A stretch of 64,000 nucleotides of DNA from Macrostomum hystrix. Lineage: Eukaryota; Animalia; Platyhelminthes. Position numbers and translations under genes: made by a program. Position 1 is the first letter of the stretch; every line of letters begins with the position of its first letter. This document shows, one piece after another, positions 1 to 13,954 of this stretch. Under the pieces are notes generated by a model that was not told where the DNA came from, made no database searches, and was given only the letters and a program-made list of their open reading frames with translations. The stretch covers positions 372,001 through 436,000 of the forward strand of contig CATNEN010000010.1 of the NCBI GenBank assembly GCA_950097015.1, read 5' to 3'.

Positions 1-150
1 CTAAAGAAGTCAAAAGCAAGACAAAGGAAAGAAGAAGTGCACACGAAGAAATTTAACGTTGAGAACGGAAGAAATGAATAAAACCTACGAATACTTATCA
101 ATCGAAATAAACTGACTAATTTGTGTCCGACATGTGGTAAAGGGCGGCGC

Positions 151-236
151 GGTCGACCTCACATCACGCCACAGACCGTGGATGTTGTCGGTCGACCTTA
201 CATCACGCCACAGACCGTGGATGTTGTCGGCCGACC
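151..236. repeat. 39-bp tandem duplication (about 2.2 copies) overlapping the 3' end of the first ankyrin gene
   Basis: GGTCGACCT(C/T)ACATCACGCCACAGACCGTGGATGTTGTC starts at 151 and 190, with a partial third copy at 229. Confidence 0.9.
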
Positions 237-1482
237 GGCCCGTCCGGCAGTTGCGGGCCCGCCCCTTCGCCCGTTGGCCGTCGGCGGTCCACGGTCAGGC
301 GGCAGCAGCTTCAGCACCCGGCGCCGATGGCCCATGGCTGTTGCCGTCTCACGCAGCGACCTCGGCCTGCTAGAAGGCATCGCCGCTGCTGCCCCAGCCG
401 CCACCGCCGACCCCGCAGTCCCCGCAGTTAAACTGTCAGACCGGTGGCCGCGATCGCGGATCTCGGCGTTGACGTTGCGGTTGGCCAGCAGCTGTACCAT
501 CTTTCGAGTGTCACCAGCCAGAGTGGCGTGCACGAACTCGAGTGTGGCGCGGCTGCCCTCCAGCAGGTCCACAATCAGGCTGCCGGCACCGACATGGCGG
601 GCGAAGCTGATGAGGCTCTCTCCGTCAGTGCGGGTGATGCGGACTCGAAACCAGCAGCCCAGCAGCCGATCCACCAGGAAATAGTCGCTTGCCTGCAGTG
701 GATCGGAACAGGATTAGGGACATATAAATCGACGAAAATCACGGACAGTCGGGCCTACCTTAACGGCGGCCCACAGTCCGCCTGGAGGAAACTCTTCGTA
801 TGCGCTGCGCGCAGCCTCCGCCGCTGAACGTGCTTCCTCATCTTCGGTGGTAGCAGCCTCTTCAGCAGAATCGACTAGAGCAGCAAAGTCGGCCGACGGT
901 TCCTGGCGGGCACCGCAGCGCAGGAGGGCTCGCGTTAATAGGGGAAGGCGCCGACGCAGAGCGCGACGCAAAGGGGTGTCGCCACTGGCGTCCTCGGCGC
1001 TTGGGTCCACGTGGTGATTCGAGAGGGCGTAGATGAACGGCTCGAAGGCGGTCTCTGTCTGGTGCTCCGCTGTGGATGCCACCAAGTGCAGAAAGTTCAC
1101 GCCGAAGTTGGAGTCGGTGAGTGTGACAGACTGCTGCTGACAGTAGATGGCGTGGTACAGCGCAGACAGACTGCAGCTGACAATGGCTCGGTACACCGGA
1201 GAGCTGGCGAAATCCTTTGAAAAGACATGCAGACTGAAGCTGCCGTCGTTGGGCTCTATGGCTGATAATAAAATTAAGAAAAGCGGTAATCTTTAAACAC
1301 TAAGGAGCCTGCGTATCTTATCCCATACAAATTCTCCCCACCAGCATCGGATCTTCCAAGACTGCCTTACCGGACTCCAGCGAGCTGTCGGAGCAGCTGC
1401 AGTCCTCGATACTGGGATCCTCGCCGTCCAGTATGTCACTGCCATCGCTGTCCGCAGCGTGGTTATTCCGTCTGGAAGCCAT
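198..1482 (-). CDS. Ankyrin-repeat protein with an acidic N-terminus (3 exons, about 369 aa)
   Basis: Exons 1482-1371, 1261-759 and 692-198 join in frame through GT-AG introns (phases 1 and 0). The product is MASRRNNHAADSDGSDILDGEDPSIEDCSCSDSSLES-AIEPNDG..., with ankyrin-like motifs SGDTPLRRALRRRLPLLTRALLRCGA, DGESLISFA and MVQLLANRNVNAEIRD. Confidence 0.65.
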
Positions 1483-2707
1483 GCTGTTCGCGCGGCGCCA
1501 ATGACATGGCAGGTAAGCGCGAGACGCAGAAACTCGAATGGGCCCAGGTGGAAAGACTGCGAGCAGCCAATCTGGCGCACTGGCTCGCCACTCTCTCCCT
1601 CTATCTCAACTCTTTAGCCTTCTTGCTCTCGCTCGCCTTAACACCTGCATGTGAAAGTGGGCGCCCGCACTGTACACGCCTCATTCACTCTCTGCCCTAC
1701 GAGAAGTAGTGCGGGTGATTCAATGTACGCAGACGCTTCCACTCGCATGCGGCTCATACTCAAAAGTTTGGGTGGTAAGGAGTGGGTGAGGCGAATTGTG
1801 TACGCTAGGGCAGAGCTGGCGGAGGGGTGGGGAGACAAGGTGAGATGGAGTGGACTCTATTGGCTGGGCCAGTTGCGGAGCTTAGGAAATGGAAGAAGCT
1901 ATGGGGTGTGCAAACGCTAATTTTGCTGCTTTTTAGCTTAGCAAAATGCTACTGACTTGCTACTGACTGTTGGTGAGTAGCATTGAACGGTATTGACTCA
2001 CGAATTTTAGCAGTGGGCTCACTAAGCCTAGACAGTGGGTAGGCAAGCGGATAGGTAGTGGGTAGGAAGTGGGTAGGCAGCGGGCACAACGTAAGGCATT
2101 TAATATTCGCAAGGCATTTAACGTATAGTATAGTGGACATTGCTCATTCGCGTTGTAATGTTTCTATTATTTGTATGTTACTAGGCGTAGGCTTATAGGC
2201 TAGATCGTCATGCCTGCAGTTTATCGGAAATTTACATCAAACTTAAACCCTACATTAATTAGCTTTCATTTAAATAAAATCAATGGCCTACAGCTTTGAA
2301 AGGGGCGAAAGATCAGCAAAGCTTAAAAGCTAAAATGTACATTCCAAAATGAACGGGTTCTCAAACAACTCGCTGAATTTATGTTTAGTGAAATTTAGTG
2401 AGAAATGTAAACATATTTTATAACTCGGTTCCATGAGTTTGTTATTGCCTACAACTTTTGCAACCAGAAGTTAAAAAAGTTGCGAGTTTCAATATCACAA
2501 AACGATGCAGCTTCAATATTTGCCAAACTGGCCAAGTTATCCAAATAAAATTTAATCCAAATGTGAATTTACTTTAAATCTACATTAAAGTGCGATGGAA
2601 TGGAACAGAACATGCGAACCAATTCATGGCACATATGCACATGATGCAACAGTTATGATTCAATTGAAGTATGAGTTCCTGTACAGCAGCGCAGTTTTTC
2701 CTGTACT

Positions 2708-3997
2708 TCATGGGCTTTCATAAAGTTCCTTAAGAGCCGCCAGCACGACTAGCCGTCTAACTTGAACTCCTTGAGCCGCCCAGATGCTGAAGGCAGCACT
2801 AACCGGCTTGTCAGACATTCCAGCCAGACCTACATCGCTCAGCTGTTCGTCTTGGCGAATCAGTTTGGCAAGGAAGTCCTGAGTTTGTCCACTGTGCAGC
2901 AATCGAATTTCCAGCTCGGCCATTTCCTCTGCTGAATATTCCTCGTCCAGTAAAGGCAGAGCTGTAGGGATGTTGTCGAGCACACTGGGTACAGAGGCCA
3001 CACCACTGTCGACCGAGTTCACGGGCTTCATCCATGATTCGATTCTGAAGCTTGCCATCACTGCAGGAACAACAGTGCTTTGAGTAATGGGGTCCTGCTG
3101 CTCCTCAAAGTCCATCTCAACAGCGGACTCTTCATTCTCGAGTCTGCTGAGAGACAGATCCTCGCCACTGGAGCCTTCGCTGTCCTCCTCCAACGGGTCG
3201 GCGCCGTTGTCAAGGAGGAATCGAGCTGCTTGAACCGCGCCGGCATTCACTGCTGACATCAGCGGCGTCCAGCGATTGCCGCGGTGTTGCCTCTCGTCAA
3301 GGTTGACGTTGATGCCAGTGTTGGTTGCGAAATCCAACAGCAGGCTCAGCATGTCAGTCCGGTCTCGAGTCGCCATCAGGTGAAGCACCGTGTCTCCAGC
3401 ACGGTCATTCATGTGGATGGCGGCAGCTACCTGGCCTGCCACAAGCCTGCCCTCCTCGATCAGAGTCCTTGTTATTCTCAGTCCGGCTTCGAGGACCTCA
3501 ACAGACTCCTCCAGTGCGCAGTGGTGCAGGAAGTTTCGGCCGTTGTTGTCGTACAGTCGGTGAAGCTGAGTCGGCTCTCTGACCAGCAGGCGCTCCATCA
3601 AATTCTCAGCTGAGCTGCCACTCGATGTGCTCAGCATGAGCATGGTTTCCCTACTCTGCGAGCGGTCGTCAAGAGCCTCGGGATTTTGACTAGCCGCAAT
3701 GTCCAACAGCTTCTCGGCCCGCTCGCCCTGCTGCCGCAACAGAGCAGACGCCACGGGATTGTCGCCGTCGCTGTTGCGAACTCTCAGCCTGTCGGAGCTG
3801 CTGTTAAACGCCTGCAAGAGAATTTCTTCACAGTTGGCGCCCTCGCTGTACTGGTGAATTGCAGTGGCCAGAATGCGCGGATAGTCTAGCAGCAGGCGTC
3901 GCTGAATCGCCTGTGGCAGAGCGCGGAACCTCAGGGACTCGGGCGTCTCGCCCTGGGCTTCAGAATCTAGGTTCAGCTGCTGCATTTGAAGATTCAT
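2708..3997 (-). CDS. Ankyrin-repeat protein with a putative C-terminal death-fold domain, paralog A (429 aa, intronless)
   Basis: Long single ORF with ankyrin motifs GDNPVASALL, NGRNFLHHC, AGDTVLHLMA and NRWTPLMSAVNAGAVQAARFLLDNGADP. The tail is helical (PVSAAFSIWAAQ...LVVLAALKEL). The death-fold call is by pattern only. Confidence 0.85.
   Translation of the reverse strand: MNLQMQQLNLDSEAQGETPESLRFRALPQAIQRRLLLDYPRILATAIHQYSEGANCEEILLQAFNSSSDRLRVRNSDGDNPVASALLRQQGERAEKLLDIAASQNPEALDDRSQSRETMLMLSTSSGSSAENLMERLLVREPTQLHRLYDNNGRNFLHHCALEESVEVLEAGLRITRTLIEEGRLVAGQVAAAIHMNDRAGDTVLHLMATRDRTDMLSLLLDFATNTGINVNLDERQHRGNRWTPLMSAVNAGAVQAARFLLDNGADPLEEDSEGSSGEDLSLSRLENEESAVEMDFEEQQDPITQSTVVPAVMASFRIESWMKPVNSVDSGVASVPSVLDNIPTALPLLDEEYSAEEMAELEIRLLHSGQTQDFLAKLIRQDEQLSDVGLAGMSDKPVSAAFSIWAAQGVQVRRLVVLAALKELYESP
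3173..3985 (-). repeat. 813-bp cassette, near-identical inverted copy of 9575-10387
   Basis: Both copies run from ATGCAGCAGCTGAACC to GACAGCGAAGGC and have the same length. I count about 7 amino-acid differences over 271 codons. The flanks do not match at DNA level. Confidence 0.95.
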
Positions 3998-4993
3998 TTG
4001 CTCGAGTTTAAGTTTTAAAGGACTTTTTGTGTCATAAAAACTCTTTGATGGATCTCGCCTTGCGTTTGATTTCGTCTTGAGGCTCTGCAGTATTTATATG
4101 AAATGCAGGGTCGCGGGTTACATGCGAAATAGTTTCTAGCAATTTAGTTAGCTGGGCTCGCCGTGAACAATCCGCGGGTGGAGAACGTTTCTATTTTTAG
4201 ATCTTACGAATTCGCTTCTTACTTGTCAGGCATTGGACAGTGTCTGCATACAGCAGTGCGCGCTTGCAGTTCCAGATTGGGCTGAAATCAACATTGTGCA
4301 GACGCTCACTGACTAGAGACTGGGAGTTGAGGGACAGGAAACTTAAAACTCTAGAGTTTAAGAGGCTGCTTTTGCCTAAAAATGCGCTGCGGGGACAAGA
4401 GGTTTTCAGTTTATCTGCACAAATTTAGTGACAGTTTTTGTTTGGAAGCGGATTAAGGGCTCATATTTTGATATTAGCTTTCTTCATCGATTTCTGTCAA
4501 GCTTTAAAAGCTTTCTGTCAAAGGTTTCATATCCATTTTCCGCTTCTCTACATGCTGTCCCGTGTGCGGTGTAAAATACCTATGCTCCTGAAACAACAAA
4601 ACCACTAAGAAACAAGCTATTTGTTTTCTCTAATTTGATAATCTGATCAATTATCAAATACATTTATGAATATGGAATTCAAGCCTTATGACTCGTTTAT
4701 TGTTTAAGCCCTGTCACTGTTATTAATAAAGGCCTAGTAGTGAAAAAACACGAAGATAAGGTTTTCAGAAATAAAGCTGTGTGAAATTCCTGGAAGCAAC
4801 ATGTAAGGTACATCATATGCTAATAAGAGCTTTATAGATCAGCTTACAAAAATGATGAAAATGAAAAACAAAACCATTCAATGATCTTTTAATTTTCATG
4901 TAAAAAATTCCAATCTCAATCTTTTGGTGAAAACAAGACTCACAAAATTTTTCTGAAAACGTTGCATTTGTCCTTCCACTCTTATAGGTGGAA

Positions 4994-5300
4994 GGGGGTT
5001 GTAGCCTTGTGGCTAGAGCGTCGGACTTACGACTTTAAGGTCGTGAGGCACTTACAACTCCACAGAAACAATTTGTGTCCTTTAGCAATTAGATACATCT
5101 CTGCATTGCTTCAGTTCACCCATCTGTTAAACGGGATGGGCACCAGCAGCAGTTGGAGTAATTGAGGGTGGGCGTGGCGTCCCCCCCCAGTCCATTGACT
5201 GAACAGCCGTACGCAGCATTCAGTCCATGCGCAATAGCTACGGCTGCGCTGTCGGCTGCACATCTGGCCCGATGGAGTTAAAAAACTCCTATATTTCATA
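4994..5300 (+). mobile_element. tRNA-derived SINE (family A) with a CORE-like central block; 3' boundary approximate
   Basis: tRNA-like head GGGGGTTGTAGCCTTGTGGCTAGAGCGTCGGACTT with the B box missing. The block TGTGTCCTTTAGCAA...GCTTCAGTTCACCCATCTGTTAAACGGG resembles the MIR/CORE domain. Block 5176-5206 recurs inverted at 24803-24834. Confidence 0.6.
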
Positions 5301-5417
5301 CGTAAATTTGTGTTTGTTTCACTTCCCCACAGCTATCCTATCCAGCTTCAGTGAGGGAAATACGATTCGCTTGCTGTCATTCACTTACAGATACGGATAC
5401 TGTTGTGTACACATAAC

Positions 5418-6330
5418 ATGGTGACGAGCCTGAGCATTTCCGTGCCACGCGTGTTTCTCGCCTACCCAGGACAGCCACACACGCCTTGGAATCGTTGGAT
5501 CGAAGGATTCAAGATCTACCTGGAGGCCTTGGACCTTAACGAAGCATCGGACGCACGCAAGAAGGCGATACTCATCCATCTGCTTGGCGAGGAGGGCCAG
5601 CGAATCTACGCGCTGAGGAATCTGCCAACGGCAAACGTCGGCACCTTTGACTGGTGAAAGATTTTCAGGAGCAAAGCTGGTGAAAGAGCTGAAGACGATC
5701 TTCGGCGAGTCGCATAGCACCATCAGCAACCGCTACAGATTTAAGTCACGCGCCCAGATGTCTGGCGAGCCGATCAGCCAGTTCGTTGACGCCCTTTGCG
5801 AACTCGCAGCAGACTGCGAATACGGCGCTCTTCAAGACCAGATGATCAGGGACCAGATCATAGAGAAGACCCATTCGCCACGCATCAGAGAGCGACTGCT
5901 CATGGAGAAGGTGCTCGAGCTGGAGACAGCCACAGCCCTAGCGATTCAAGTCGAATCCGCCATCAACGACGCCAAGAACCTGCGCGACGGCAAGAGCGAC
6001 AAGGAGCAGGAGTCCCGCATCCAGAAGATCAGCCAGCGTCCGCCACGCAAGGGTCCCAAGCATGCGATGCCGCAGAAATCTAGCTCGGACGCGCGATGCG
6101 GCAACTGCGGATTGGCTGGGCATGCCACCTGCGCATTGAGTGTCCAGCGAAGGACAAGTCCTGCCTGCACTGCCACCGGGTCGGTCATTTCAAGTCATGT
6201 TGCCGACAGCGACGTAAGGTCCGCACCGTCAAGGATGACGATGACGACAATGAGCCATTCGAGGTGTCTACAGTTTGCCAGGCCAAGATTTCTCACTTCC
6301 GCGACAGTGCCGAGCGGCCTGGACCAGGCT
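5418..6330 (+). pseudogene. Gypsy gag with frameshifts and two CCHC-type knuckles
   Basis: PWNRWIEGFKIYLEAL...KKAILIHLLGEEG shifts frame near 5655 into RYRFKSRAQMSGEPISQFVDALCELAADCEYG..MIRDQII. A second shift near 6135 separates CGNCGLAGH from CPAKDKSCLHCHRVGHFKSCC. Confidence 0.85.
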
Positions 6331-7058
6331 GGCAAAGAAGAAGTTGGGGGGAGAGGCCTATAGACTCAGAGTAACAACTGGGTTCTGTAGGCAAACCTTC
6401 CTTCAACGGAGCGGCCCGGAAGTGACTAAACCGAGCATCTCCAAAAACAACAGTAAGTTCAACCGGACAACAGAGGAGAAGAAGAGCGAACAGGCTAAGA
6501 ACACCAAAACAGAAGACGGAAGAAGAACGACAAAAAAAGGCAAAATGAAACAAAAACTAGTAAAAACTCTAAAGCAACCAAAAATAGAGAGCGGGGAGGA
6601 GGAACGTCGAAGAGAGCTGCCATCCAAGATTATGACCGACAACGTACCGAGCATTCGAATACCTAGTCCCTCTGGACCATCCACATCGACTCAGCGGTGG
6701 CAAGCGGCTGCAGGTCGGCCATGCCTGGCCTCGTGCGGCGGAGGTGGCGCTGTTCCAACTCGGCGAACCGCGCGCCTTTCCTGCAAGCTACCCTACACCG
6801 CTGGGGCAAGGTACCCGCTGCGTCTTGCCCCCCACTGCAACGCTCCCCAGGAGGACACGCGGAACTTCCTGCTCGACTGCCCCAGGTGGGCCGATCAACG
6901 CCGCAACATCCTCCATTCTTCTGGCTCAATGTCCCTCCTGTGGGAGGACCCACAGGGAGAGAGAATCAAGAGAATCGGGTGCGGATCTTCATCGAGGCGA
7001 CGGCGCGCTGCCCCCCATATGCCTAGCGAGGGATCCGTACGCCAACAACAACAACAAC
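6330..7058 (+). mobile_element. Internally deleted non-LTR retrotransposon (LINE 3' end, I/Nimb/Ingi-like) inserted in the gypsy element; 5' boundary approximate
   Basis: A composite of frames at 6720-6910 gives VALFQL..RAPFLQATLHRWGKVP.ASCPHCNAPQEDTRNFLLDCPRWADQRR, the typical LINE ORF2 C-terminal zinc knuckle. It ends in a (CAA)5 tail at 7043-7057. Confidence 0.7.
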
Positions 7059-7799
7059 GGGCCCCAGTTCACCAGCCACGCATTCGAGGAGTTCCTGGCC
7101 GGCCAAGGCGTGAAGCACATCAAGACTTCGCTGTACCATCCGCAGTCGAACTCGAATGTCGAGCGGCTCAACCGTACGCTGAAGGAGTCGTTGAAGGCCC
7201 ATCTCAAGGTCGGCATTAGCTTCAAGAAGGCGCTCCGCGAGTTTCTGCAGTGCTACCGGTCAACGGCGAATGCGACCACGGGCCTGACGCCTGGAGAGCT
7301 GATGATCAGCCGGCCGCTCCGAGGGCCACTCAACAAGTGGAGCCGAGGCATCCGCCAGCCGACATCGAAAGCGACATCAGCGGAGGCCACGGAGCGACGA
7401 GACCAAGCCAACAAGGAGAAGGCCAGGCTAGCCACCGATTGTCGTCGAGGCGCCCGACCTTCACGACTGCAGGCTGGCGACACTGTGCGCGTCCGCCGGC
7501 CACAGACTGCTCACAAGCTGCGACATGGCTGGGCGACGTTCGGCAAATCATTCGTCGGCTGGGCCCCGAGTCCTGGCTGCTCGAAGACGGCTCGCGATGG
7601 CACTCCGATAACCTGGACAGCGTACCCAGTACACCAGCGGCGGACCAGTGACGCGTCCGACGTTGGACTCGGCACACTGATGGCGCCGACACCATTGCCG
7701 GAGCCACCGGTGAGGCCGCCGGGCAACGAGAGGCCGCTGCCACAGCCTAGGCGAGGCAGCCGGGTCCGGAGACCGCCAAGTCGGTTCAGCCCGAGTTGA
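7056..7799 (+). pseudogene. Truncated gypsy integrase core and C-terminus
   Basis: NGPQFTSHAFEEFLAGQGVKHIKTSLYHPQSNSNVERLNRTLKESLK is the rve core from the second Asp region onward. There is a frameshift near 7525 and an RRGSRVRRPPSRFS C-terminus. Confidence 0.85.
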
Positions 7800-7900
7800 T
7801 ATGCAATTTGCAAATGAAGTTAATGAACTGTTGAATTTGCGCACCAATGGACTGTTGTTTTCCCCATCCGTTAATCCCCTTTTGCTTTCGAAGGGGGTGA

Positions 7901-8126
7901 TGCTGTGTATGCGGCTTACATGCCGCCTTAGAGTGCGCGTGGCGCTTTTTGATTGGCTGGGGGTCGGTCTGTCCAAACCAGTCTATGCCGGGATAGGGGG
8001 TAATTGTTGTTTTCTCTGACTGACTAAAATATATATTAGTGCGCAAGGCCCTTGGAGGGCTCGCGTTTTTTCAACCTTCTAACCCAGTGCTCCGTTCTTC
8101 ATTTCTTCGCTGCCTCACACATAACT
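7901..8126 (+). repeat. 3' LTR of the gypsy element (about 225 bp)
   Basis: Directly follows the polypurine tract. Its termini TGCTGTGTA and ACACATAAC match the two halves of the 18-bp remnant at 5401-5418. Confidence 0.65.
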
Positions 8127-9511
8127 AGGCCTAAATAAATTGGGGACATTTAAATAAATAAATTAAAACACGCAAAATTCACAAATGGCCTTGTTAGAAA
8201 AGCATCAATTTTGTGGATTTTCCGCGGAATTGCCGGGGCGAGAAAATTAACTTAAAACGTTCCACGGACTTGCCACGGACTGGCCGCGGACTGACCGCGG
8301 AGTCGTACACACTGCTGTAGATTAAAAGCTCTGTGCCATTTTTAGTACCTTGTTCTATGAATCTATGCTAAGTAATTATTGTTATAAGTAAATTATTTTT
8401 TTAAGTTATTGGTAATTGGTGTCACAAAAAAGAAGATAATATAACAGACGAAAAACAAAACGAAGCAATAAGTGAACATTAGTTTTTTAGGCCTAATTAT
8501 TAGTTTATTCACAGTTTAAGTAGCTAACTCATGACTGTAGGTACTAGGCTTAGCTTACACTTACAAACTAAGCCTAGCACACAGCACACACACAGGAAAA
8601 CCTGAGCAAACTGTAGTTTTTTACTTGTCTCTTAAAAACAGTTTTTATAGCTTATTAAACTATGTATCAAATCTTACATTTATAATTATCAAGTAGCTAT
8701 TATAATAATTAGGAACAAGCTCCAATCTATATATTATTAAGAGCCTATGGCCTCTGCAAATGCAGATTTCCTCTGGCCCATATTTATGCTAGTCATAGCT
8801 AGGCCCAAGCTTTCTTGAATCTTGATAGATACTTACATTTCAGCATGTAACTAGGTTAGTAGATACTTTACTAGTATAAAAATATTTTTGCAATGATTCT
8901 TGATGTTAGCAATTAGCAATATTATAAATCAGTTGCATAGTACTTCCTATAACATTTGGGAAATAGTTCTGGGAAAAAACTTTCAGCCTTACATTGTGAT
9001 AACTATATGTAGCTATAGTGTATTGAAATAGTACTGTAGCTAACTATTAAACTCATTAGAAAATATAACTTCTAGCTTATCTTAACAGTTTATTATCTGA
9101 AAAAGTAAATACAGTCATTTTCACTTTCAATTAAATTATTTTTATATCTGAAACAAGTAGGTTAGCTAGCTATTGGTTGGTTGGTTGTTAATATTTATAG
9201 GTAGGCCCCTGTAGCTAGAATTGATAATACATCAACTTATAATCTTAGGAAAGGTCATAAACATTACAATGTCAATGGTATTACCAATTGTGTGGCCTAT
9301 GTAGACCAAGAATCTGAATATAGAACCTTTGGATAAAGCTTTTTTAAAGCTAATTGATAATTACTAATTGATTTCCTTGTTGGCTATTGTTCAATATAAA
9401 ATGTCTCTAGTCTACTTTTTATACCCTAAATTCAAATGAAAAACATCAAGTTCAGTTTAAGCTGCATACTCAATATCATGAGCTTTTCATTTCTAAAATA
9501 CTTTCAGCACA

Positions 9512-10864
9512 ATGCAAGGCCAGTCACCTCGAAGTAGCAAGACCAGGCAGCAGCCTGCCAGCTTGGAGGGCCGGATGCAGCAGCTGAACCTGGATTCTGA
9601 AGCCCAGGGCGAGACGCCCGAGTCCCTGAAGTTCCGCGCTCTGCCACAGGCGATTCAGCGACGCCTGCTGCTAGACTATCCGCGCATTCTGGCCACTGCA
9701 ATTCACCAGTACAGCGAGGGCGCCAACTGTGAAGAAATTCTCTTGCAGGTGTTTAACAGCAGCTCCGACAGGCTGAGAGTTCGCAACAGCGACGGCGACA
9801 ATCCCGTGGCGTCTGCTCTGTTGCGGCAGCAGGGCGAGCGGGCCGAGAAGCTGTTGGACATTGCGGCTAGCCGAAATCCCGAGGCTCTTGACGACCGTTC
9901 GCAGAGTAGGGAAACCATGCTCATGCTGAGCACATCGAGTGGCAGCTCAGCTGAGAAGTTGATGGAGCGCCTGCTGGTCAGAGAGCCGACTCAGCTTCAC
10001 CGACTGTACGACAACAACGGCCGAAACTTCCTGCACCACTGCGCACAGGAGGAGTCTGTTGAGGTCCTCGAAGCCGGACTGAGAATAACAAGGACTCTGA
10101 TCGAGGAGGGCAGGCTTGTGGCAGGCCAGGTAGCTGCCGCCATCCACATGAATGACCGTGCTGGAGACACGGTGCTTCACCTGATGGCGACTCGAGACCG
10201 GACTGACATGCTGAGCCTGCTGTTGGATTTCGCAACCGACACTGGCATCAACGTCAACCTTGACGAGAGGCAGCACCGCGGCAATCGCTGGACGCCGCTG
10301 ATGTCAGCAGTGAATGCCGGCGCGGTTCGAGCAGCTCGATTCCTCCTTGACAACGGCGCCGACCCGTTGGAGGAGGACAGCGAAGGCGTCACCGTCGCTG
10401 AAATGGCTGCGGCAACAGGAAGTCCGGAGCTTACTGAGCTGTTCCGCGAGGGCGTGGCTGACGGCCTGGCTGCTGCTGCTGGCTCTGATCCACCGGAGCC
10501 GGAGGCGGCTGCAGCTGGAGAGGCCGCGCCATGGATGACGCAAGGCCCGCCGGTGCGCACGGTGGACAGCGGCATGGGCACCACTGGCGAGCTTCAGCAA
10601 CAGTCGGCGGCCGCCACTCCGGCGCCGGTCCGCAGCCTGTCCACCGAAGAGCAGCAGCACCTCGTCCGGAGCCTCACCCAGCGTGGCAAGGAATTGGCTT
10701 TCGTTGAGGCCTTCACCCGCAGCCACGCAGACACGGTGACTCTGGCCAGGATGTCGGAGAAGCCGATTGAGTCCCTGATCACGAGCCTGGCCCACGAGCC
10801 AGGCTTCAGCGGTCTTATTCAGCAGGCTCTGTGCAGCATTGGCGCGGAGGACCTCCTGGCCTAG
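9512..10864 (+). CDS. Ankyrin-repeat protein with a putative C-terminal death-fold domain, paralog B (450 aa, intronless)
   Basis: Same ankyrin block as paralog A. The distinct C-terminus ends LIQQALCSIGAEDLLA, which resembles the death-domain L..AL..IG..DL helix. Confidence 0.85.
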   Translation: MQGQSPRSSKTRQQPASLEGRMQQLNLDSEAQGETPESLKFRALPQAIQRRLLLDYPRILATAIHQYSEGANCEEILLQVFNSSSDRLRVRNSDGDNPVASALLRQQGERAEKLLDIAASRNPEALDDRSQSRETMLMLSTSSGSSAEKLMERLLVREPTQLHRLYDNNGRNFLHHCAQEESVEVLEAGLRITRTLIEEGRLVAGQVAAAIHMNDRAGDTVLHLMATRDRTDMLSLLLDFATDTGINVNLDERQHRGNRWTPLMSAVNAGAVRAARFLLDNGADPLEEDSEGVTVAEMAAATGSPELTELFREGVADGLAAAAGSDPPEPEAAAAGEAAPWMTQGPPVRTVDSGMGTTGELQQQSAAATPAPVRSLSTEEQQHLVRSLTQRGKELAFVEAFTRSHADTVTLARMSEKPIESLITSLAHEPGFSGLIQQALCSIGAEDLLA

Positions 10865-11320
10865 TCTGCTGCGACCAGAGCTGCTTGAGTGTGTAGATTA
10901 ATTAATCTCCTGGCCCAAGGCGTTTTGGGTGGCTTTCTTTACAATTTGAGGCGTGTAAAAAGTGCACTGCTTAGCTGTTTTATTACTCTTTTTATAAAGC
11001 AAATGAGGGAATATCTGGCAATGCGTGTTCCGACGCATTGTTGCTGGCACAAAGCTTTGGATTTGGTTTTATTTAACTGTTACTCCAGTTATCTCTACAG
11101 TTACTTTTCATAATTAGCAAAATGTGTTTGACCCAGCTTTTCTGCTTTCAGTGTAAATGGATTTTAATTAGAAGAAAAGACAACAATATTTCACCTGAAA
11201 TAAAAGAAATATATAAGAATGCAAATTTATAAATATAACTGCCAGTAAAATGTCATTACATTGCTCGGTTCTTTATTGTTTATATGGTTCAAATTAGCCT
11301 CATTCACTAAAATTCAGTGT

Positions 11321-12033
11321 AACCCCTGGTTCAAATGCACCCCATTCACTCAAATCCCCTGGTTCAAATGCACCCCATTCACTGAAATCCCCTGGTTCAA
11401 ATGCACCCCATTCACTGAAACCCCTGGTTCAAATGCACCCCATTCAGTGAAACCCCTGGTTCAAATGCACCCCATTCAGTGAAACCCCTGTTTCAAATGC
11501 ACCCCATTCAGTGAAACCCCTGTTTCAAATGCACCCCATTCAGTGAAACCCCTGGTTCAAATGCACCCCATTCAGTGAAACCCCTGGTTCAAATGCACCC
11601 AATTCAGTGAAACCCCTGTTTCAAATGCACCCCATTCACTGAAACCCCTGGTTCAAATGCACCCCATTCAGTGAAACCCCTGGTTCAAATGCACCCCATT
11701 CAGTGAAACCCCTGGTTCAAATGCACCCCATTCAGTGAAACCCCTGTTTCAAATGCACCCCATTCAGTGAAACCCCTGTTTCAAATGCACCCCATTCAGT
11801 GAAACCCCTGTTTCAAATGCACCCCATTCAGTGAAACCCCTGGTTCAAATGCACCCCATTCAGTGAAACCCCTGTTTCAAATGCACCCCATTCACTGAAA
11901 CCCCTGGTTCAAATGCACCCCATTCAGTGAAACCCCTGTTTCAAATGCACCCCATTCAGTGAAACCCCTGGTTCAAATGCACCCCATTCAGTGAAACCCC
12001 TGGTTCAAATGCACCCAATTCACTGAAATCCCC
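11321..12033. repeat. Minisatellite, 32-bp unit, about 22 copies
   Basis: Unit AAACCCCTG(G/T)TTCAAATGCACCCCATTCA(G/C)TG; period checked at 11461 and 11493. Confidence 0.97.
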
Positions 12034-12558
12034 TTGTCAGCATTCACCCCACTCGTTCACTGATTGGCACTCGCCCTATAAAGGACCAGATTCATAAGCA
12101 GAATGATTAAATAAAGAACCAATGTAAAAGTTCAGAGAAAACTATTTTTGAGAAAGTAATACCAGAACATGGCCATCCATGCAGTGCAGTAATTCAGTCA
12201 GATGTCCACAGCCGGCGCAATCAACAGCGGCACTCACAATTAATTATTTGATTTGTATTTGAAAAGATAAAATGCTGCAGAAAGCAATCAGACGAGACAA
12301 TTAAGAAGAGCGGCGACCGAAGAGGCAAAAGCAAATGGCATAACAGCACAGCAACAGTTGAAAAACCACAACAGTGGGGAGGAAAGCGCACAATGTACTT
12401 TAATCCCGCGGTTCGCTAATGAAGTCAAGTTAACGAAAGAGAAAAAATGTTCTCAAGGCGATTCGCGAACACAAATCAGTCCATGAATTGGCACTATAAA
12501 TCTGCAGGCACAGCCAGCCCCAGCTCCATGTCTGCGCCTAGCTCAGGTTCAACGGCTG

Positions 12559-13954
12559 TCACAACTCGTCTGAAATATTAAATAGGACTTAATTAAGTAG
12601 TTAAGTAAGTAGGTTAAGTAATTAAGTAGGACTTAACGAGCACATCGTCACTACCTAGGAATTTGTGCAATTCAAACTCACCCCTTTCCTCTGGGGCTGT
12701 CGACTCCGTGGAATCCCCATTGAGAGTTTCCGCGGAATCGCCGCTGGGAGTCTCCGTGGAATCTACACTTGGAGTTTCCACGGAATCACGGCGGGGAGTC
12801 TCCGCCGGTTCCGGCTCGCAGTCGCCACCAGCCGCAGGTCGCCGATAGCCAGACAAGCAGTGGCAGGCGAAGCTGCCGGGAGAGTTCACGCAGGTCTCGT
12901 GCGGCCCAGAGCACGGGCTGGTAACGGATGCGCACTCGTCCACGTCAATGCAGGTGACTCGACCGTCGGCATCGGAGGCAGTGGTGTCGGCACTGGGCTC
13001 GTAGCCAGCGGCGCAGTCGCGGCAGTCGCTGACGCCGGAGCCAGCTACGCAGCCGGCAGGTCCGCAGGCCGGATGGCAGGCGAGGCAGAGCGGCGAGCTG
13101 TCGGCCAGGTAGCGGCCCGCATCGCACTTGTCGCACAGATCGCCCCCGTAGCCGACGTGGCAGTTGCAACGACCGCTGCCTGATCGGGTGCCGTTGCCGT
13201 CGCAGTCACCGCGCAGACCGCAGGCGGGGCAGGCCGCACACTTCGGCCCAAAGGAGCCATGCGGGCAGCAGAGCTGGCCTCGATCCACGCAAAGAAGGCT
13301 GCGCAGGGTGGCGGCGGCTACGGCTGATGAGCCGGCTGGATCGCGACGGAAATCGCCGAACCACCAGGCCTCGAGGGCCTCCTCGAACTGCTCCAACAGG
13401 GCGTGGCATACAGCCGTCTCCTCCTTGCCTTCGCCCTGGCAAAGCCGCTCCTGTGGAAATCAGAATGCATGTTCCTACCATACTACTACTGCCATGCAGT
13501 ATTCATAAGTAGAGTGATCGGATCTGTCTAGTTTCTAGGATCAGGAATCGGGATCGTAGAGGATTCTGAGAATGAGCATTGGGATCCTACGACTGACATA
13601 ATTTATTCTGGGATTTGGTTTAGATAATCGGGATCGTATGATTGTGAATATATCCTGTGACTTGGTATTGGCATTGAAAAAATGAGATTATGCAACCTGG
13701 ATGTCAACCAGCCGGGTCTCGCTGTGCGCCCAGCTGCCCAGCCGGCTCTCCTCCCAGTGCGTGTTTCCGCCGCCGAAGTTGTCCTTGGCCGTACGCTGCA
13801 GGCCGTTCTCGAATGCCTCGGTCAGCTTGTTACAGACGCTGCATTTGTCTGGCGCGGCAGTTGCTAGGCTGGCCCATAGCAGCAGCAGAGCCAAAGCTAG
13901 CAGGTGCTGTTGCTGCACTGCTAAGTAGCTTCCGCGTGTAGCTTGGCGATACAT
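12559..13954 (-). CDS. CRELD: Cysteine-rich with EGF-like domains protein, soluble ER type (3 exons, 345 aa, C-terminal RDEL)
   Basis: Exons 13954-13697, 13450-12682 and 12569-12559. Signal peptide, CSVC, TAKDNFGGGNTHWEESRLGSWAHSETRLVDI, LEQFEEALEAWWF, CCPHGSFGPKC, EGF/furin repeats and a cbEGF (CIDVDEC...CVNSPGSFACHC). The spliced end reads EERDEL*. Confidence 0.93.

Follow-up and report, generated by a model that had tools for sequence, protein, structure and literature searches.

Our results support a model in which one domain of an adjacent pair of ankyrin-repeat genes has evolved in concert within species, while the remainder of each gene has kept a much older history of its own. The two genes, here called A and B, lie head-to-head in a 64,000-nt stretch of the Macrostomum hystrix genome (contig CATNEN010000010.1, positions 372,001 to 436,000; hereafter the window) as two intact open reading frames (ORFs) that point away from one another (Table 1). 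In the best explanation of the data, A and B are old paralogs whose 5′ 813 nt, which we call the cassette, have very probably been overwritten through non-allelic (interlocus) gene conversion, both in the M. hystrix lineage and in that of M. lignano. The remaining 3′ parts, which we call the tails, follow a different genealogy. Comparison of the two species indicates that the A/B split is older than the split between them and that homogenisation of the cassette took place separately in the two lineages.

The two cassettes are equal in length, and a base-by-base comparison of 3985-3173 with 9575-10387 gave 11 mismatches in 813 nt (98.6% identity), four of them synonymous and seven nonsynonymous. 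When polarised, five of these positions show the derived letter in A (all G>A), three show it in B and three are ambiguous. A repeat search of the first 14 kb returned a single long inverted repeat, formed by the cassettes (arms 3152-3985 and 9575-10408, 834 nt, 97%), and no third copy was found within the 64-kb window. Identity sets in at the ATG of MQQLNL, upstream of which the flanks of A and B do not align, and it ends sharply after EEDSEG, with 10 mismatches in the following 21 nt. A preliminary description of this DNA, made from the letters alone, had correctly reported equal-length, near-identical cassettes starting at an ATG, but it let them run to the end of the last ankyrin repeat. 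However, the Pfam Ank_4/Ank_5 matches of gene B and two of its modelled helices go on past EEDSEG (VTVAEMAAATGSPELTELF), and thus the tract boundary is inside the last ankyrin repeat, in the loop ahead of its helices. Gene B and the M. lignano genes retain this last half-repeat, of which gene A has a degenerate version.

In the cassette, paralogs within a species are more alike than orthologues between species. M. lignano copies are 99.1-100% identical to each other, whereas every between-species pair falls at 78.6-79.1% (78.6-78.8% for copy A of the window against all M. lignano copies). Of the informative quartet sites, all 161 favour a grouping by species and none one by type, and an approximately unbiased (AU) test on cassette DNA rejected the type grouping (p = 7e-72). 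A protein test is uninformative in this region, where M. lignano A and B do not differ in amino acid sequence, and the test was therefore done on DNA. Between window A and B, synonymous divergence (dS) and nonsynonymous divergence (dN) in the cassette are 0.021 and 0.011, respectively (dS = 4/197 synonymous sites), as against 0.76-0.84 and 0.13 between species (dN/dS about 0.16). Since the synonymous sites have been homogenised too, purifying selection alone cannot explain the cassette identity.

The tails group by type. Taken alone, tails A and B are homologous (BLASTP E = 7e-07, 31% identity over 81 aa); their alignment includes WM..V.(S/T)VDSG, LS.EE and LA.MS(D/E)KP, and the alignment of the whole proteins reaches residue 407. 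They are strongly diverged, with dS of 1.5-2.6 and dN of 0.7-0.97, and the M. lignano A and B tails are as different from each other as the window tails are. Tail B shares 54% aa identity with the M. lignano B tail at a dS of 0.80, which equals the between-species dS of the cassette, as expected of orthologues; on their sequences, the B tails of the two species are orthologues. Tail A is nearest to the M. lignano A-type tail, with 38% identity, shared indels and an SIW..G motif. In the tail tree, support for joining the two B tails is 99/98 and for joining the two A tails 72/77, and an AU test rejected the grouping of window tails A and B by species (p = 0.0002). Between species, the tails evolve faster than the cassette (dN 0.37-0.57).

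These results agree with the preliminary description in its central claim, namely that A and B are old paralogs whose ankyrin block has been homogenised by gene conversion. It had suggested separate trees for cassette and C termini; run with two species, they place the cassette by species and the tails by type. The dS comparison that it also suggested sets a value of 0.021 for the A and B cassettes against at least 1.5 for the tails. Its remark that the proteins still align beyond the cassette is confirmed by the tails-only search, which likewise disposes of its concern that the C termini might share no homology. Finally, a simple recent duplication, which it considered a poor fit, conflicts with tails that are orthologous to the types of another species.

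How might such a pattern arise? Under gene conversion, the 813-nt stretch that opens with the start codon and closes in the loop preceding the last ankyrin half-repeat would have been copied from one gene to the other at least once per lineage. The cassette would then evolve in concert within species, and the 5′ flanks and tails would keep their separate, much older histories. The tract is probably limited by the reach of heteroduplex, which could not spread into the upstream flank, where homology is lacking, nor far along the diverged tail, and selection against converting tails may contribute. Conversion, as opposed to another kind of exchange, and the part played by selection are inferred from this pattern. 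Two variants of the mechanism were considered and rejected. GC-biased conversion is not favoured because the converted block has no GC excess: the GC content at third codon positions (GC3) of the cassette lies between the A-tail and B-tail values in both species (0.71 vs 0.53 and 0.74 in the window; 0.81-0.82 vs 0.64 and 0.86 in M. lignano). RNA-mediated homogenisation was rejected because the identical tract begins 67 nt 3′ of the gene B trans-splice acceptor, so that the mature 5′ untranslated region (UTR) lies outside the shared block.

The comparison with M. lignano also bears on the arrangement of the genes. The same neighbourhood is present on three M. lignano contigs (L001-L003), which carry AnkX (a further ankyrin-repeat gene), an A-type gene, a B-type gene and then an EGF_CA gene on the other strand. 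The order AnkX-A-B-EGF_CA is thus kept in both species, but A and B are in tandem in M. lignano and head-to-head in the window. When window 1-4000 was compared with L003:4800-11400 and L001:1-5800, gene A was the sole inverted gene in the window; AnkX, a satellite remnant, B and the EGF gene keep their orientation. The inverted arrangement in the window species rests on assembly. In M. lignano, A and B share a 5′ block of about 870 nt, from CAAATG to the ELKEL codons, that is 99-100% identical with 0-2 mismatches on one contig. This tract has the same start (CAAATG) as the window tract and ends 57 nt farther on.

The tandem order in M. lignano lends some support to reciprocal recombination, in which unequal crossing-over within the cassette would have occurred once per lineage while the genes were in tandem, before the inversion in the window species, with hybrids replacing the originals. 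An extra gene on M. lignano contig L002 (L002:800-2541) is such a hybrid in form, joining an A upstream region and cassette to a B tail; its A part is 99.9% identical to L002:3975-5252 and its B tail 99.7% identical to L002:10084-11431. In addition, the A/B cassette divergence in the window (1.35%) is about that from two close relatives (about 1%), and the B letters at 9630 and 9750 are shared with a close relative, so that exchange after the inversion is unproven. However, a crossover leaves one hybrid and alters copy number, whereas both species keep one A and one B with type-specific 5′ flanks, a pattern that requires a non-reciprocal patch bounded on both sides. In the inverted orientation, crossing-over would flip the spacer and would not homogenise the copies. 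The L002 hybrid, for its part, comes from one contig of an ambiguous assembly and enters a 21-nt satellite about 12 nt past its stop, a 3′ junction that simple unequal crossing-over does not predict; it may be a true recombinant, formed by exchange inside the cassette, or else an artefact in the assembly of that polyploid genome. We therefore regard reciprocal recombination as improbable and favour gene conversion.

A second concern is that the near-identity might be an assembly or polishing artefact, with one copy imposed on the other. Near-identical 813-nt repeats 5.6 kb apart are of a kind that short-read polishing can homogenise, and Logan DNA contigs pop bubbles that could hold further differences. 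In the DNA contigs, however, depth over the cassette is 161-206 vs 85 in the flanks, or about double, loose ends at 9575 and 10387 lead into the gene A upstream flank and tail, and A-type letters occur at 9630, 9750 and 10047. Contigs from an independent RNA run of 2020, made in another study, cover the B cassette (9507-10387, 881 nt) and 10358-11184 with 0 differences and no joints, and a separate contig from the same run goes from the cassette end into the A tail and on for about 749 nt, to about 2424. Contig depth in RNA is 23 for the A tail vs 166 for the B tail, and RNA-type runs contain 0.96 of the words of 2400-3172. Thus, both junctions are found in independent DNA and RNA contigs, contrary to the assembly artefact that the preliminary description had warned of, and genes A and B are both real, intronless and transcribed. 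The same pattern also appears on three contigs of another species' independent assembly, and an artefactual origin is very unlikely. We attach next to no weight to a history with no exchange at all, by strong purifying selection on the cassette or by recent whole-gene duplication with fast-diverging tails: the constrained cassette and faster tails between species would suit it, but not the cassette dS of 0.021 within vs 0.8 between species, nor tails whose A and B types each have an orthologue in another species, with a B-tail dS at the level of species divergence.

Some observations are pertinent to whether exchange is ongoing. On M. lignano contig L001, two sites tell A from B; the B copy on L002 (mB2) has A letters at both (columns 30 and 786); in mA3, the A copy on L003, the letters at these sites are mixed. 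RNA contigs of the two close relatives, apparently representing gene B, carry the window B letters at 9630, 9750 and 10329 together with derived window A letters at 10238 and 10273; gene A of these relatives was not seen in the contigs. The presence of the B-specific letters at 9630 and 9750 in the relatives means that those differences predate that split, and the A/B mosaic is suggestive of further short exchange. Separately, one Logan DNA contig over 9593-10016 switches from gene A letters, at 9630 and 9750, to those of gene B at 9871-9958, which shows that de Bruijn contigs blend the copies and are unusable for phasing.

Several points weigh against our interpretation. The orthology of the A tails is its weakest link, with a branch of moderate support (72/77) accompanied by shared indels, the SIW..G motif, low GC3 and an AnkX-adjacent position, and the A-tail dS between species is saturated at about 2.3, above the 0.8 expected. 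Only two well-sampled species were compared, and the M. lignano assembly is redundant and ambiguous (PMC10468722). The read check was made on assembled contigs, not raw long reads, and such contigs may conceal further A/B differences. The mosaic in the close relatives likewise comes from de Bruijn contigs, a type shown to mix A and B letters in the DNA run. Finally, one event per lineage is enough to account for the data, and recurrent conversion is not proven.

Table 1. Coordinates of the features discussed, in window positions (GC3, GC content at third codon positions; LTR, long terminal repeat; pLDDT, predicted local distance difference test)
Feature	Position	Strand	Description
Gene A ORF	2708..3997	-	429 aa from ATG 3997; conserved start MQQLNL at 3985; intronless; transcribed
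Gene B ORF	9512..10864	+	450 aa from ATG 9512; conserved start MQQLNL at 9575; intronless; transcribed
Cassette copy A	3173..3985	-	813 nt, 271 codons; ankyrin-repeat domain to EEDSEG
Cassette copy B	9575..10387	+	813 nt
Tail A	2708..3172	-	154 aa + stop; degenerate last ankyrin half-repeat, acidic disordered linker, C-terminal helical domain; GC3 0.53
Tail B	10388..10864	+	158 aa + stop; intact last ankyrin half-repeat, Ala/Pro-rich disordered linker, C-terminal helical domain; GC3 0.74
DSGVAS motif, gene A	2993..3010	-	DSGxxS, beta-TrCP-type phosphodegron consensus (putative function)
DSGMGT motif, gene B	10565..10582	+	invariant DSG; segment pLDDT about 30
C-terminal helical domain, gene A	2711..2941	-	77 aa; homologous to the predicted death fold of B; model built on the B sequence
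Predicted death-fold domain, gene B	10622..10861	+	5-6 helices; AlphaFold2 pLDDT 80-86 in full model, 82.5 alone
Spliced-leader trans-splice AG acceptor, gene B	9506..9507	+	first nt of the mature mRNA at 9508, 67 nt upstream of the cassette
LTR-retroelement remnant, frameshifted	5400..7800	+	ORFs; weak Pfam PNMA (E 0.0025) and rve_3 (E 0.0076) matches
AnkX, further ankyrin-repeat gene	198-1248	-	unrelated to the A/B family (tblastn); neighbour of gene A
EGF gene (EGF_CA)	12614-13860	opposite to A-B order in M. lignano	from synteny comparison

The proteins combine an ankyrin domain with a linker and a C-terminal helical domain. The ankyrin domain has about 6-7 repeats and an IkB-like shape, as judged from Pfam Ank_2/Ank_4/Ank_5 matches and Foldseek; both proteins carry ankyrin families, gene A matching Ank_2/Ank/Ank_5. 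In the AlphaFold2 (AF2) model of B, the helical repeat domain is confident at residues 150-290 and weaker in the N-terminal repeats (pLDDT 50-66), residues 297-352 are disordered and hold a conserved Trp and the invariant DSG, and the C-terminal bundle at 357-428 is again confident. The D-S-G is invariant in 5/5 family members within an otherwise unconserved linker, occurring as DSGVAS, DSGVSS and DSGVQS in the A type and a third paralog and as DSGMGT and DSGMCT in the B type. This DSGxx(S/T) is a putative signal-dependent beta-TrCP phosphodegron.

The C-terminal domain is predicted to adopt a death fold. The tail fold model was made with AF2 from a 5-sequence alignment, and VIA-align comparison of the B tail domain with death domains (DD) gave Z 8.8 for TRADD DD, 8.3 for ankyrin DD, 8.1 for p75NTR DD, 7.7 for p100 DD and 7.5 for p105 DD. 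Overall, the values span Z 7.3-8.8 and include the Pelle and UNC5 death domains, with the top 38 rows all death-fold; these Z values are middling for helical bundles. Foldseek on the tail domain gave template-modelling (TM) scores of 0.58-0.68 at E about 1. Pfam searches of the five tails at E up to 10 found no Death (PF00531), CARD, DED, Pyrin or SAM match, and a profile of the five tails run against 1.84 billion representatives matched only two other M. lignano clusters and nothing outside Macrostomum. An ankyrin-SAM identity, suggested by an ESM Atlas feature search whose low counts of shared features (124-137/256) make it uninformative, was rejected, with no SAM among the Pfam or fold matches.

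With the full model, Foldseek against Swiss-Prot placed p100 best (query residues 7-429, tail included, E 1.9e-9), followed by IkB-beta, p105 and BCL3, at E 1e-9 to 1e-6 and TM 0.41-0.52. No Rel homology domain was found on the A and B polypeptides, whose ORFs start at the ankyrin domain and for which Pfam gives only Ank families, and the window contains no Rel gene. Because the domain is lacking, in an mRNA that for gene B is trans-spliced 67 nt before the ATG and has no introns, A and B are not members of the p100/p105 group. Judging from the models, they would act at most like stand-alone IkB or p100-C-half proteins, a function that we infer from architecture. The preliminary description saw distinct putative effector ends on the two genes. 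The tails are indeed diverged and separately inherited, but the models depict two old versions of one architecture, a DSG linker plus a predicted death fold, and not different effectors. The function proposed in that description, a common binding module that would feed two outputs, is a plausible hypothesis.

A more elaborate scenario, rather unlikely but worth stating, is that homogenisation is kept by selection. The two ankyrin domains would have to evolve jointly with a common partner, such as a Rel-type factor, and the two death-fold tails and DSG linkers would couple the module to different upstream signals. Concerted evolution of the same domain would then be older than the Macrostomum radiation, and crossing-over between the inverted cassettes could flip the 5.6-kb spacer, swapping promoters and trans-splice sites between the tails.

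Gene B is trans-spliced. The loose end GAAGACTCAATTTATTGCAT precedes 9507 in RNA contigs of two organisms, the window organism and a close relative, and equals the 3′ end of the M. lignano spliced leader (SL; PMC8629364). The terminal AUG of the leader opens a 10-codon out-of-frame upstream ORF, with a stop at 9535-9537, ahead of gene B, and gene B itself has two in-frame candidate starts, at 9512 and 9575.

The wider locus has a eukaryotic composition, with GC-rich exons and AT-rich spacers. The 5.6-kb spacer between A and B holds the LTR remnant, which comprises an integrase fragment and a gag whose two zinc knuckles lie in different frames. Between AnkX and A, a 22-nt repeat remnant at window 2029-2084 resembles a long satellite of 21-nt units that precedes gene A in M. 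lignano. In M. lignano, AnkX lies at L003:4847-6109, and its ORF has a CLPA/CLSV simple-repeat insertion. A minisatellite with 31-32-nt units lies a few hundred bases 3′ of gene B in both species (window 11258-12165; L001:11552-12706), in about 22-28 copies in the window and 38 in M. lignano; the repeat units of the two species are dissimilar. In a whole-protein search, the only close relatives of A and B were three M. lignano clusters at 64, 61 and 44% identity, the other matches being generic ankyrin proteins. The most distant of these M. lignano members, P0003 (L004:6001-7722; 44% identical), has an A-like tail with DSGVQS and, unlike A and B, probably contains an intron, given its 1722-nt range for 412 aa. 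The B-type copy at L003:15613-17063 has a one-base cassette deletion (alignment column 587) that splits its ORF into 247-aa and 239-aa pieces, which reflects either pseudogenisation of a homeologue or an error in sequencing.

Our findings have practical consequences for work on this family. Trees or orthology calls based on the ankyrin half would falsely suggest recent species-specific duplications in Macrostomum, and short-read or k-mer assemblies will blend the two copies, as one DNA contig does. Among the papers searched, none ties Macrostomum to domain-limited gene conversion, and the A/B pair offers a case, confirmed in two species, in which conversion between paralogs is restricted to a single domain, in a phylum for which seemingly none has been described. 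Stand-alone proteins with an ankyrin domain, a DSG motif and a predicted death fold may also be of interest for NF-kB/IkB evolution, if their putative function is borne out. In these features A and B resemble the C-terminal half of NF-kB p100/p105 (IkB-delta/IkB-gamma), which likewise has an ankyrin domain, a C-terminal death fold and DSGxx(S/T), and the tail domain matches the p100 DD at 22% identity. Unlike p100/p105, A and B are without a Rel homology domain and have their DSG in the linker that joins the ankyrin domain to the death fold; in p105 it is located after the death domain.

As a process, conversion works in both inverted and direct orientation, the inverted Drosophila hsp70 pair, the gamma-globin genes and palindrome arms being familiar cases. 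The closest parallel to A and B is mammalian TLR1/TLR6, where conversion is restricted to about 300 aa, with independent events per species and converted stretches that nearly coincide across species (Kruithof et al. 2007, PMC2077338). That study concluded that conversion keeps one functional region from diverging far as the other domains become diverse (PMC2077338), which is also the idea of the preliminary description. Both systems consist of adjacent paralogs in which the converted region is more similar between paralogs than between orthologues and the rest of the protein groups by orthology. In contrast to TLR1/TLR6, whose converted region is C-terminal (leucine-rich repeats LRR16-19, transmembrane segment and TIR) and whose genes are in tandem, the A/B tract is an N-terminal ankyrin domain that begins at the start codon, and the pair is arranged in tandem in M. 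lignano but head-to-head in the window; our sample comprised two species as against nine for TLR1/TLR6. Long-lasting concerted evolution has also been described for mammalian gene pairs, together with a theory of conversion between duplicates (PMC2720389, PMC3924837). As in those pairs, A and B have homogeneous stretches in which paralog similarity exceeds ortholog similarity through speciation, with sharp ends where homology stops; they differ from them not in kind but in being a new locus in a new phylum. Domain-limited concerted evolution is thus well known, and the A/B pair is a clean further example that will not surprise a specialist.

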